Source: Podarcis bocagei
Taxonomy: Eukaryota
Assembly (NCBI GenBank): GCA_964188305.1
Contig: OZ076894.1
Reading direction: 5' to 3' (one strand)
Length of the DNA stretch: 64,000 bases
The position numbers were made by a program, and so were the translations under genes. This document shows positions 5,442 to 57,214 of this stretch, piece by piece. Under the pieces are notes generated by a model. That model made no database searches. It was not told the DNA's origin and saw nothing but the letters and a program-made list of their open reading frames with translations. How positions within the stretch are numbered: position 1 is the stretch's first letter; each line of letters starts with the position of its first letter.

Positions 5442-8400
5442 TATATGAATCTCATCTATGAAGCACATGCTGTTCCTCACAAAATCCACAATGCTTGAAA
5501 CCTATTTCATCCCAGAGTAGGAGTTTAGAAGTAGGGGAGCAATAAGTCTGCATGATAGACAACAATATAGTGCCCAAACAAGTGGAACAACCATAAACAC
5601 CCATCCCATTATACCTGAAGCAAAACTGATATGAATGAGTGTTTGAGATTTAAATGCAGTGACAGACTTTACTTTTAGCAGACAATGCCCATCCATTTTG
5701 CCAAACCTTTTGCAACCATGACCTAGGATTTACATTGGCAACTTGGAAATAAGCAAATTATTAGTTCCAAGTACTTCAGTGGTTGAAGTAAAATGCTTTG
5801 TCCCTTAGCCACAATTGTTTGAAATGAAGTAAGGCAAAGAGAAGATCTTGAACTGATTGTTGAGTTTGAGATACTTTTACTGTTGTCATCTTGGAGCTCA
5901 ACATTTCATTGTGCACTATGCAAGTATAATAATTTCTGCTTGTAGATTAAATCAAAGTGACAAAGCAGTCACACTGTCAATTGAAGGGGCAGTGTAGTGT
6001 TTCCCTCCCTTTCAGATAGCAATCTGGTATGAATTACCTAGGATACTAGGGCATGTTACCATGATCCTTACAATGTTCCTGTATGGTAGTTACTGTTGAC
6101 AATTCTGTGAAATAATGGAAGAACAGAAACAAGAGGAATAATAGCCACTTTGGCATTCGGGATGAGGCAGGCTGGAAAGTATGAAAGTGAAGGGATGTAT
6201 CTGGCTACATTTTTAAAAAATGGAAGCTCTCCTAGTAAAATGAGCAGTAAAGACATTTCTTTACATTCTCTATCACCAAGATTGCCTAAAAGTTACTAAC
6301 ACATTGCCAGGTACATCATGCTGTTTCACTTGAATGCCAACAGCACAGCAATAAAGAAATTCATAACAGCTGCATGGTAATTTTATACCGACTCTTTCGG
6401 TACAAGTTTAGGTATGTGCATTTCCTGCCAGGTACCTGGGGAACCTCAGTATTAAAACTCCACTTAACAAGAAACTCTATCTTTATTGTGAAAAGACAAT
6501 GGGAGCCAAAAGTTTAGGATAGAGCAGTATATGGTGGGGGAGTTAGGAAAGGATAAGAACACACTGTTGCAAAACCAATGGCTGCGAGAAGCCAACCTCT
6601 CTGACACAATGACTTTTGAAGAAGAGTGAAAAGTTCCAAAGTCATGTAAGATGACATATAAAACCCAATTCCAGCACTGCATCTTTTGGTATGTCAGGGG
6701 GATTGAAAAAGTGAAACTTTTATTCCCATACTACAATACTGTACTGCTTTTACTATGTAGCCTAAGGAACCTGTAATGACCCCCAGATCTGAGAATCTGC
6801 CCATCTTCTCTTCCTTAACTGATTTGCCTTTGGCATTGTATCATCCTTCCATGCCCATGACTCTTTGTATCCTGGACAATGTCTTCTGGACTTAATTGTA
6901 ATAAATAATATAACTTGTAGCATATCAATTTTTTCTTTGCAACAACTGTTCAGAGCTAACTTAGGTTGTGATCACATTGTAGCTTGCTAAAATTCAGGGC
7001 ACTGTTTAACCATGAGCTAGCTATGTTTTGGGTTCTTTGTAACCTTTAAACACAGTTTGGATTGTAACAATGAGACATGTATGCTTAACATGCAGCTATA
7101 ATCTTGGAAATGTTAAGTTACTAAGCTTTTATGGTACCTATTTAGCTGGAGTGATGTTTGAATGCTCACCGGTTTCTTCCTTGTCTTTCAAGATAAAACA
7201 GGTAGCCTAATGATTAAGTGAGGAAAATAGTAGAAAGTAATATTTCAAGTTTATTCTCTTTTTATCAGACAGGCTTTAAAAAGCAGGATACATCAAACAC
7301 AAATGCTTTTAATGGTAGAGGTGTGAAAACCCCAAAGATTTCTTAGGGAACAGTTAGTACAGAGCTTGATGTTTTAATAATCCATTTTTTTTACTAGTGA
7401 GCTGGAACTGGTGATATTTTTTAAAAAACACACACACATTACTTTCGAATTGTGATAAACAGTAGTTCTCGTTCTTCTTTCATTTTCCTGTCTTGTCTAT
7501 TTAGAGTTCTCTTTAAAAAAACAAAACAAAAAAACAACGCACATTCTCTCTCAACTTTTTATTCTATAATACTTTATTATTCCTAGAACTGATTTGTAAC
7601 TTGACTGAAAAATGTCCCTGACAACCTGTCACACAAATATCAGGTGCCCCTACTTGTGTGAGCAGTACACTCCATTTATGTAAGGCCTCCACTGAATACA
7701 TCCTAGTGTTTGTTGTTTTTATACACCATTTCTATACTTTAAAAGTATCAAAGTAGAATACATTAAAATGAATAATTTAACTGTAAAATACTACAGTATA
7801 ATAAAATTCATAATCTAATCCAGTTTCCTAAAACAAACTGAAAACAATGAGCCATACTAAAAATGGCACATTTGCAATCCCCATATGAAAGCTGATCTCA
7901 CACCAATGAAATTGAAACAAAACCCTTCCGAAATAGAAATAACTTCTGCAGGTGTCATATTTGATAAGGAAGGTAACCAGGCAAATTTCCCTTGGGACCA
8001 AGCTCTACACTGTGGGTGCCACAACAAAGAAGACTGCACTTCTTCCCTTCTCAGACTGGTAAAAACTTGATTCAAAGGCAGAACGCAAAGCATTGCCTTC
8101 TTGACAGTTATCACATGGTGGGGAATAACATATGGGAGAACTTGTTTCGTCAAATACAAAGGCTATTTTTAACAACCCTTTGAAATGTACACAGAAACAT
8201 AGCAGCAGCCAGTACAGTTCAACTAAGATTAACAAGCTTTGGTCATTTCACCCTCTAGAAAATGTGCAGCAGAATTGTCTTCAAGCCACAGTATCTGGAT
8301 CACTTTCACATGTCACCACATTGCAGCAGTCTACCTAGAAGGTTATCTGTGTCCGGTGGCCAGTGGCTGGTGGATCTGATTACAAAAATGGGAATCGTAC

Positions 8401-48097: not shown

Positions 48098-48142
<45 letters not shown>
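48098..48142. repeat. (AT)n microsatellite
   Basis: Directly visible. Confidence 0.97.

Positions 48143-54472: not shown

Positions 54473-54518
<46 letters not shown>
54473..54518. repeat. (TA)n, left part of the PLE target microsatellite
   Basis: Directly visible; further (TA)n tracts at 54694-54731 and 56056-56074. Confidence 0.97.
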
Positions 54519-54521
<3 letters not shown>

Positions 54522-54691
54522 GGTTTTGGTGTCTTCGGGTGTCTTCCCGTGTAAGAGTTGGGGTGTCTAGGCGACGTTTCGACGAGGTCTCACTCGTCAT
54601 CGAAACGTCGCCTAGACACCCCAACTCTTACACGGGAAGACACCCGAAGACACCAAAACCTGCATTCCTGTACCCGTGAAAATCTACGAAA

Positions 54692-54693
<2 letters not shown>
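54519..54693. mobile_element. Short fold-back PLE insertion: minus-strand 3' end joined to plus-strand 3' end
   Basis: 54517-54582 is the reverse complement of 54600-54665; the sequence is essentially identical to the termini of the larger insertion; (TA)n on both sides. Confidence 0.85.
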
Positions 54694-54733
<40 letters not shown>

Positions 54734-54810
54734 TTTCGTAGATTTTCACGGGTACAGGAATGTAGGTTTTGGTGTCTTCGGGTGTCTTCCCGTGTAAGAG
54801 TTGGGGTGTC

Positions 54811-54854
54811 TAGGCGACGTTTCGACGAGGTCTCACTCGTCATCTTCAGGCTGG
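54811..54854 (-). ncRNA. Minimal hammerhead ribozyme motif, mirror copy
   Basis: Exact reverse complement of 55967-56010. Confidence 0.75.
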
Positions 54855-55370
54855 TGCTTTCGGCTTCTTGTTACTGGAACAGAGCAGGATCTCAGTGTTT
54901 GAGTTCCTATAAATACTGTTGAGGGGGTGTGGTGCAGAGAAGAAGTTCCCAGGTTATTGTGCCTTTTCTTCTTTTGTTCTTTAATTACTTGGGGGATATC
55001 TTGAGTGATATCTTGAGTGGTATTCTGAGTACCACTTAGGTGGGTCATTAAGTGTGGATTAGTTGCTATAGCTTTCGTGTCTTGACCTTTTGAGCTAGTG
55101 AAGAGATTTTTCTGAGAAGATGGCTGTACTGCACTTAGTTGTGCTCTGGCTTGGCTTCGTGTATAGGGGCGAGCTGTGGTTTTGTGCCCTGTGCCAGCCA
55201 GATCTGTGTAGGGATTGCAGGGGGGTGCAGCATCCGGAGGTGCCACTATGGTTTGGCTACCGGATGGAGTCTGTAATTTATCTGTGGAGAGGGTCTGGGT
55301 TTGGGTCTGGTGTGGTTGATAGGTGATGGCGTTCTGTGTGCCTCTGGTCCTGGTGTCGGTTTTTGTGGGG

Positions 55371-55988
55371 ATAGAGATAGAGAAACACCCTCACAACATG
55401 AACAAGCGTGACGACACGTCCCGCCTGCCAGACATCTGGAAATTAGCCCTCCCCACAAAAACCGACACCAGGACCAGAGGCACACAGAACGCCATCACCT
55501 ATCAACCACACCAGACCCAAACCCAGACCCTCTCCACAGATAAATTACAGACTCCATCCGGTAGCCAAACCATAGTGGCACCTCCGGATGCTGCACCCCC
55601 CTGCAATCCCTACACAGATCTGGCTGGCACAGGGCACAAAACCACAGCTCGCCCCTATACACGAAGCCAAGCCAGAGCACAACTAAGTGCAGTACAGCCA
55701 TCTTCTCAGAAAAATCTCTTCACTAGCTCAAAAGGTCAAGACACGAAAGCTATAGCAACTAATCCACACTTAATGACCCACCTAAGTGGTACTCAGAATA
55801 CCACTCAAGATATCACTCAAGATATCCCCCAAGTAATTAAAGAACAAAAGAAGAAAAGGCACAATAACCTGGGAACTTCTTCTCTGCACCACACCCCCTC
55901 AACAGTATTTATAGGAACTCAAACACTGAGATCCTGCTCTGTTCCAGTAACAAGAAGCCGAAAGCACCAGCCTGAAGATGACGAGTGA
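55371..55988 (+). pseudogene. C-terminal 205 codons of the PLE ORF (end of GIY-YIG domain plus T/P/Q-rich tail); no native start
   Basis: Part of ORF 55323-55988; its first 16 aa come from the inverted arm. Open without interruption to ...QPEDDE*. Confidence 0.75.
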
Positions 55989-56010
55989 GACCTCGTCGAA
56001 ACGTCGCCTA
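55967..56010 (+). ncRNA. Minimal type I hammerhead ribozyme motif (PLE-associated)
   Basis: CTGAAGA 55972-55978, extra T, stem II GACGAG/CTCGTC (55980-55985/55992-55997), GAAA 55998-56001, palindromic ACGT as stem III, predicted cleavage after GTC at 56005. Stem I is weak (2 clear bp). Confidence 0.75.
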
Positions 56011-57214
56011 GACACCCCAACTCTTACACGGGAAGACACCCGAAGACACCAAAACATATATATATATATATATACATGCTTCAATATAAAATTTTCAAAT
56101 CACTTAGAGAAGACACTCAAGTTCAAGGTTTTGCCTGCTTCATACTTTAAGCTAGTGGCATATTTGCTGCTAAAAAAAGCAAAACACATATTCACCCATC
56201 CATAGTAAGTTGTTTGCCTGAAGGTTGCATGGGTCAGATAGTCTGCATTGGGGGGCAAAAATCCTTATGAAGAAAAATCCTATGTTTCTTCAGCCCACAA
56301 ACAGATTGCAAATATGCCAAATAATATGAACAACAAAATAGATAATGCAGGTACAAACTCTTTTGGGGGGGCATGGCCATTTTTCACAATTCTCTTATTC
56401 TTCACAATATTTTACTGTGATGTGCAGGTCTCCATGAATCCAAAAATAACACATAATTCATAAATACAAATTAGTGGAAACAAAATATAACAAGCTGACT
56501 TAGGCTAGGGTGTTGCTGTGCAGTTGTAATGACTCAGTTCTGCTCAGTTAGAAACACTGAGGTTACATACACCAGACTATGAGGGAAAGGGTGTTGTTTC
56601 ATTTCCTGACCCCAGCAGGAACTGCAGGGATGGGCATTGCATGAGTGGTCTTGCCTAATATGCTGCTCCTAGAACTCTTACCCTGTTCCGTCTTTGATTC
56701 TCAATTCAGTAATATAAAGCTTACAATGGCTGTTGGCCATTCCTTTCTTTTTCTTTAAAGTTTCTTCAAAGCTACATACACCACACCAAACAGTGCTCAA
56801 AACTTGTAACAACACCATGAGTTTCTTCCAGGAAAGTGTCCTCGTTAGAGGTGCTGTCTTGTGCCCAAGATTGGGAGGGGGGTGGCCTGCAAGACCCACA
56901 CATGACATCATGTGCCCAGTTTGTATTGCATGCATGTGACATCGTGCATGCGATGCATACAGCACATGCAACGTCACATCATTGGAAGGAGGCCAAGCAT
57001 GTAGTCCAGCATGGTGCGGCTTCCCCTCTCACACTCAGGAGGAACCAACCACTGAACCATGTTGTGCTTCACTCAGTGATCAGCCTTCATCCACTTAGGG
57101 GACCCAGCCTTGTGCCAGCAGATTTTGAGGGGGCCAAAGACACCTCCGCCCCTAGAAGTTGGCATGCCTGGTCCTTGCCATGAAGCAGGAGGGAAAAAAA
57201 AGGAAGGAGGAGGA

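Follow-up and report, generated by a model that had tools for sequence, protein, structure and literature searches.

Positions 54473 to 56074 of a stretch of 64,000 nucleotides from Podarcis bocagei (contig OZ076894.1 of assembly GCA_964188305.1; this whole stretch is referred to as the window) carry four 5'-truncated copies, A to D, of a Penelope-like element (PLE) set in a (TA)n microsatellite. Sequence reading and a repeat search give the order (TA)23 (54473-54518, from sequence reading), copy A (54519-54601, minus strand), copy B (54600-54693, plus strand), (TA)19 (54694-54731), copy C (54732-55371, minus strand), copy D (55371-56055, plus strand), and (TA)9.5 (56056-56074), with all four element 3' ends pointing into TA tracts. 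This bears out the layout proposed in an earlier interpretation made from the letters alone (here, the sequence-only reading), namely, two minus/plus pairs embedded in TA repeats. The outer tracts are the left and right portions of the target microsatellite, and the middle tract separates both insertions. Copy A is an 83-nt 3' end of the element, truncated at its 5' side within stem II of the hammerhead motif described below, and copy B is a 3' end of about 94 nt that includes a 34-nt tail (54660-54693, plus strand). Copy C spans 640 nt, including its tail at 54732-54765, and copy D spans about 685 nt and lacks the tail.

The two minus/plus pairs are head-to-head palindromes. The A/B palindrome found by the repeat search has arms of 69 nt (54517-54585 and 54597-54665, 99% identity) and a spacer of 11 nt; the C/D palindrome has arms of 612 nt (54760-55371 and 55450-56061) and a spacer of 78 nt. 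The latter arms differ at only two positions, both among the six bases at their outer edge and beyond the element itself, and the element arms proper (54766-55371 and 55450-56055) are 100% identical over 606 nt, where the sequence-only reading had noted 605-bp arms and noticed no differences. A perfect inverted repeat of this length cannot be a product of chance. A third palindrome, with arms of 116 nt (54597-54712 and 54713-54828, 98% identity) and no spacer, is centered on the middle TA tract. All three overlapping palindromes that had been claimed are thus present, but the middle one is not an independent feature, because two adjoining head-to-head pairs must produce one. The 78-nt spacer of the larger palindrome (55372-55449) is the extra 5' sequence of copy D and codes for the end of the GIY-YIG domain. 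At the inner junctions, A and B overlap by 2 nt (TC) and C and D by 1 nt (A), and copies B and C differ by a single G>A change, located in the tail. The left and right flanks of the locus are unique sequences, neither being an inverted copy of the other. No further copies of the element were found elsewhere in the 64-kb window, nor was a direct tandem (pseudo-long-terminal-repeat [pLTR]) of the element present in it; such partial direct tandems are frequent in PLEs but not obligatory (PMC8557442). The long open reading frames (ORFs) elsewhere in the window gave no match in Pfam. A comparable target, an (AT)22 tract at 48099-48142, lies 6 kb upstream and is free of PLE insertions.

Copy D retains an ORF remnant (55371-55988, plus strand) starting with IEIEKHPHNMNKRDDTSRLPDIWKLAL, the C-terminal end of a PLE GIY-YIG endonuclease (EN), and this frame has its mirror counterpart in copy C (ORF 54833-55246, minus strand). 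Beyond the endonuclease end, the ORF continues into a low-complexity extension of about 180 amino acids that terminates in PEDDE and a stop codon. A Pfam search with the window ORF alone returned no domain, and an exhaustive profile-free protein search returned six relatives. A TSNAX gene model of Podarcis muralis (P0001; UniRef A0A670HLY4) has as its final ~100 residues the PLE C-terminal extension, at 89% identity to the window, which reflects either an exonized PLE fragment or an annotation error. P0002, a metagenome-derived ORF of 223 amino acids, matches the window ORF over its full length at 46% identity and has the same PEDDE end. A second protein search added P0033, a Phrynocephalus GIY-YIG protein that matches the window ORF at E=1e-20 with 67% identity and scores 25 bits against the Pfam GIY-YIG cutoff of 22.6. 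The window ORF residues IEIEKHPHNMNKRDD... align with the end of the GIY-YIG domain in P0033 and in P0005, one of the six relatives from the first search, in which this domain end is the block IEIEKHP..N.RDD and the core reads GVYEIPC...YIGQT...R..EH.

The reverse transcriptase (RT) is not found in the window copies, which are 5' truncated and at most 685 nt long, but is present in longer homologous copies. Relatives of P0005 combine RVT_1, HTH_animal, and GIY-YIG, and RVT_1 was also found in P0007, P0024, and others. In a Phrynocephalus locus (L003), RVT_1 with the YVDD motif was detected above the cutoff at 6001-6564 (E=4.6e-10), and in the copy at L003:6117-7922 an RT segment and the GIY-YIG core are accompanied by the C-terminal extension, hammerhead, and element tail seen in the window. 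Among the related copies, those of L003 (about 1.8 kb) and L008 (about 1.7 kb) are the longest. By reading, no CX2-5CxxC motif was found in the ~45 residues before GVYEIPC in L003 ORF 6739-7113 and P0005, and because of this we place the family with Penelope/Poseidon and not with Neptune/Nematis. Judged by its sequence, the element is a canonical endonuclease-positive (EN+) PLE of the Penelope/Poseidon type, of which the window copies keep the last 83 to 685 nt. A non-LTR retrozyme was considered and rejected, as the copies are inverted rather than tandem and carry the PLE ORF end. With regard to distribution, the EN region of P0005 shows 52 to 61% amino acid identity to proteins of beetles (Aquatica, Anoplophora, Leptinotarsa, and Pyrocoelia) and squamates (Phrynocephalus and Ahaetulla) alike, and the patchy occurrence of the relatives P0008 to P0045 in beetles and squamates could hint at horizontal transfer.

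The ORF runs into a predicted ribozyme. A motif search with the pattern CTGAAGA-T-helix II-GAAACGTC located a complete minimal hammerhead in copy D (55972-56005, plus strand; CTGAAGA-T-GACGAG-TGAGAC-CTCGTC-GAAA-CG-TC), with predicted cleavage after 56005 and the ATG of the next-unit ORF at 55978, the start of stem II. Its mirror image lies in copy C (54816-54849, minus strand; ORF ATG at 54843). The motif shares the traits that have been listed for minimal hammerheads of metazoan PLEs (PMC4209133), i.e., an additional base following A9, pairing of G10.1 with C11.1, a long helix II, and the palindrome ACGU where helix III would otherwise be. Among eight distinct sequences, pairing in helix II reaches 93%, three of its six pairs show compensatory changes, and one pair of helix I covaries too. 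Rfam reported no hammerhead, either in this region at E<=1 or in the whole window at the gathering thresholds, a miss that is expected since the motif lacks helix III; in the same scans, the palindromes and the TA tract drew nothing but spurious matches to miRNA hairpins. Copies A and B are cut inside the motif and lack the CTGA core or more, leaving only two complete hammerheads in the window. Because these sit on opposite strands, any single transcript would contain one. The last codons of the ORF (55971-55988; CCT GAA GAT GAC GAG TGA, encoding P-E-D-D-E-stop) constitute the hammerhead core and stem II, the stop codon lies in loop II, and the ATG of the next unit overlaps the PEDDE codons out of frame. 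This extension of the ORF past the endonuclease into the ribozyme is also found in L001 and L003, and the conservation of PEDDE in P0002, despite only 46% identity, is probably enforced by the ribozyme. Taken together, the GIY-YIG-linked ORF, the combination of RT and GIY-YIG in longer relatives, and the covarying minimal hammerhead uphold the assignment to PLEs made in the sequence-only reading. As a separate observation, three tandem canonical hammerheads (CTGATGATGTCCCCTAGTTGGGTCATGAAAC), spaced 165 to 190 nt apart, lie on the minus strand of a Pituophis catenifer locus (L004:11507-11890); this retrozyme-like array is about 5 kb from the PLE copy of that locus, which ends in (AGAT)n.

The 3' ends of the four copies stop at three points, exactly as had been quoted from the letters. 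Copy D ends in ...ccaaaac|(AT)n, copy A in ...ccaaaacctgc|(AT)n, and copies B and C both in ...ctacgaaagc|(AT)n. Counted from the ORF ATG, these ends lie at +78 (D), +82 to +84 (A, a range given because the final AT cannot be told from the repeat), and +112 (B and C), and the 34-nt tail is accordingly present in B and C and absent from A and D. The same two end classes recur in the Phrynocephalus loci L003, L005, L006, and L007, where they read ...catgcat|(AT)n and ...ctacgaaaac|(AT)n. PLE insertions may bear an optional tail of 30 to 40 bp (PMC8557442), and in Poseidon_Ac (PAc) the tail was shown to be delimited by two internal sites of RT initiation, of which the distal lies 111 to 118 nt into the ORF (PMC11167929). 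The +112 end of the window copies falls at LRK|H, which can be lined up by eye with LRQ|H of Poseidon_Ac. The three stop points match the two known RT start sites, with and without the tail.

The architecture recurs in related genomes. We surveyed six genomic loci from three species (Phrynocephalus forsythii, n=4; Pituophis, n=1; Ahaetulla, n=1) and two short contigs, fetched via protein matches and hence blind to structure. With the four junctions of the window included, 14 of 15 readable 3' junctions adjoin (TA)n, and the remaining one adjoins (AGAT)n. All four sampled Phrynocephalus copies end in (TA)n, and three of them (L003, L006, and L007) form head-to-head pairs in which both 3' ends lie in (TA)n, arm identity is 95.6 to 98.1%, and the inner junction has an overlap of 0 to 3 nt. 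The sequence-only reading would have been undermined by other copies showing neither TA targeting nor inversion; in Phrynocephalus, a related genome rather than the window's own, we find both. The fourth Phrynocephalus copy (L005) has an inverted internal piece from the RT region at its 5' side, adjoining a TA tract. End points were compared in five pairs, i.e., the two of the window and those of L003, L006, and L007, and three of the five have unlike 3' ends: short and long in A/B, long and shortest in C/D, and long and short in L006.

A further observation concerns a mini head-to-head pair at L005:6706-6806 (Phrynocephalus forsythii JAPFRF010000012.1), which consists of a minus-strand tail piece of about 30 nt and a plus-strand piece of 63 nt. 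It shares a (TA)n tract with a 1.5-kb copy and in this respect resembles the small A/B pair of the window. The start of the plus piece coincides precisely with the predicted site of hammerhead cleavage, GTC^GCCAAAAC, as expected from RT run-off on self-cleaved RNA, although this is a single case and could be due to chance.

On balance, we consider it probable that the locus represents two separate recent insertions of one Poseidon-type family into one (TA)n tract, each a head-to-head, 5'-truncated pair that arose by priming on both strands. In this scenario, the GIY-YIG endonuclease of a ribonucleoprotein (RNP), probably a dimer, would introduce a nick into each strand of the target, which is AT rich and self-complementary, and each freed 3'-OH would prime reverse transcription of the element RNA. 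Synthesis would start not at the RNA end but at two internal sites ~30 nt apart, at +78 to +84 and at +112, and because either site may be used, a copy would come with or without the 34-nt tail. The cDNAs would then halt at 83 and 94 nt (A/B) and at 640 and 685 nt (C/D), their 3' ends would be joined with 1 to 2 nt of microhomology via RT template switching or end joining, and fill-in synthesis would yield the minus|plus pairs with both 3' ends towards the TA repeat.

Several lines of evidence point in this direction. Purified Poseidon_Ac cleaves and extends both strands in vitro, prefers AT-rich DNA, is predicted to be a dimer, and starts reverse transcription at two internal sites bounding the tail (PMC11167929), while inverted 5'-truncated copies, tails, and a (TA)n bias are general traits of PLEs (PMC8557442). 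Most directly, independent priming on each strand is supported by the three of five pairs that differ in the end points of their arms, since self-copying cannot give such differences. We observe the structure of the locus, its identity as a PLE, where its copies end, and that relatives show the pattern again; we infer that both-strand priming and cDNA joining, as put forward in the sequence-only reading, produced these loci in vivo. The discordant arm ends and the published in vitro data make this the best explanation.

Some considerations weigh against this scenario. Both window pairs have arms of nearly equal length (83/94 and 640/685 nt), which the Phrynocephalus pairs do not, and a simple model of two independent cDNAs does not predict such near equality. 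The snake copies L004 and L008 are simply truncated and have no inverted partner, which shows that pairing is not obligatory. To our knowledge, the joining of two cDNAs has never been directly demonstrated for any PLE. The survey was small (the six loci in three species) and was drawn from related genomes rather than from the window's own, the perfect 606-nt palindrome is known from the assembly sequence alone, and the window copies keep only the last ~26 endonuclease residues, with only partial copies of the exact family retrieved.

The near-equal arms might be accommodated by a more symmetric two-primer event, a version that we put forward tentatively and as somewhat doubtful. Here, once a dimeric RNP had nicked the (TA)n palindrome on both strands, the two cDNAs would be started simultaneously and joined head-to-head, so that arms of similar length would reflect two polymerases running in step until joining. 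If true, young palindromic copies would be the first in vivo record of target-primed reverse transcription (TPRT) on both strands by a PLE.

Near-equal arms would also follow naturally if each insertion had been primed only once, by TPRT from a single nick, with the inverted arm generated afterwards by snap-back onto the nascent cDNA or by L1-like twin priming. We regard this as unlikely, though it has points in its favor: the inner junctions overlap by no more than 0 to 3 nt, as template switching would give, and the inverted RT-region piece by the TA tract in L005 resembles the outcome of twin priming. Arms made by snap-back should, however, share their end point, whereas three of the five pairs combine an arm with the tail and an arm without it, and the larger window pair contains a 78-nt stretch that is unique to one arm. 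In L1 twin priming, a nick in the second strand supplies a further primer and microhomology serves to join the two cDNAs, which leaves an inverted 5' segment; since this second primer anneals within the RNA, the inverted segment stems from a different part of the element and no palindrome results. Both arms of the pairs described here, in contrast, carry the 3' end of the element at recognized RT start sites.

A palindrome might instead have formed at the DNA level after an ordinary insertion, by template switching during replication or by hairpin-mediated inverted duplication at the cruciform-prone (TA)n. Tracts of (TA)n are self-complementary and promote fold-back rearrangements, and the perfect identity of the C and D arms would fit such an origin. 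Even so, we hold it to be improbable, given that the outer end points of the arms differ and that independent loci of another species show the same architecture, all of their arms stopping at canonical RT start sites. Because architecture and end points recur so regularly, an insertion mechanism is favored over sporadic rearrangement.

The inverted pair could also be a fold-back assembly artifact of one copy, in line with the reported difficulty of assembling the tandem and inverted structures of PLEs (PMC8557442). The unique, noninverted flanks, the differing arm end points, the unique 78-nt center, and the threefold occurrence of the same architecture in the independent assembly of Phrynocephalus make this very unlikely. 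Finally, the TA-flanked inverted arms look superficially like a Tc1/mariner-type element, but a DNA transposon or miniature inverted-repeat transposable element with long terminal inverted repeats and a TA target-site duplication can be virtually dismissed, as the arms code for a PLE endonuclease end and a PLE hammerhead, the outer ends lie at three different points, the inner ends are variably truncated, and no transposase was found.

The insertions look recent. The C and D arms differ at none of 606 bases, compared with 2 to 4% in the Phrynocephalus pairs, which agrees with the youth assigned to them in the sequence-only reading and, at typical vertebrate neutral rates, translates into a rough estimate of the last one to few million years. 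Gene conversion between the palindrome arms could also maintain their identity. Ongoing activity of the family is plausible.

The sequence-only reading is accurate in what it observed and essentially right in how it interpreted this, but the novelty of the locus had been overstated. Inverted truncated copies, tails, targeting of AT-rich or microsatellite DNA, and extension of both strands have all been published already (PMC8557442, PMC11167929), and the stop points correspond to the known sites with and without tail; hence, the locus illustrates known properties of PLEs and adds no new one. Three modest points may be new, namely, a squamate Poseidon family whose ORF has a long C-terminal extension overlapping the ribozyme, the strict (TA)n flanks of a family without the zinc finger-like motif earlier proposed to mediate such a bias, and the genomic discordance of end points as in vivo support for both-strand priming. 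The origin of inverted repeats in PLEs has been called undefined (PMC8557442), and extension of both strands has so far been seen in vitro only (PMC11167929).

More generally, young and unmutated pairs keep both their outer RT start points and their inner junctions, and for this reason a genome-wide tally of end points could test a two-priming origin, in a transposition cycle that is still poorly understood. Lying between AT repeats, a perfect 606-bp palindrome may be prone to instability, and its transcription, if it occurs, could give rise to a hairpin RNA. Apart from such palindrome effects, the locus is an ordinary transposon insertion.

Among the known systems closest to the window family is Poseidon_Ac of Anolis carolinensis, a PLE of the Penelope/Poseidon clade (PMC11167929). 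In both, the ORF ATG lies at the start of stem II of the minimal hammerhead, two internal RT start sites bound a tail of ~30 nt at the same ORF position (about +80 and about +112), and insertion occurs into AT-rich DNA. The RT (MGSPLSPV.AN.YME.FE...YVDDTF.IW) and EN (LPYIKGTTD...GVY.IPC...YIG.T) of PAc are close to the L003 ORFs in an alignment made by eye only. The window family is nevertheless a different sequence family, of a squamate lineage, with its closest protein match in a Podarcis muralis gene model. Its ORF continues for ~180 amino acids past the endonuclease to a stop codon in hammerhead loop II, while in PAc about 125 nt separate the end of the ORF from that of the unit; its flanks are strictly (TA)n, in contrast to a mere ATT motif in PAc; and its window copies are inverted pairs, while the genomic copies of PAc have been described mainly as tandems.

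The EN+ PLEs Penelope, Neptune, and Naiad likewise show strong 5' truncation, an adjoining inverted 5'-truncated copy, an optional tail of 30 to 40 bp, and a microsatellite bias that includes (TA)n (PMC8557442), but the direct partial tandem (pLTR) known from these elements is not present at the window locus. The (TA)n bias has been published for Naiad and Neptune, whose EN has an additional CX2-5CxxC motif (PMC8557442), and the relatives of the window family are without this motif. Finally, the locus departs from L1 twin priming in that both primers would act at the dedicated 3' start sites of the element, which yields true palindromes with two 3' ends.

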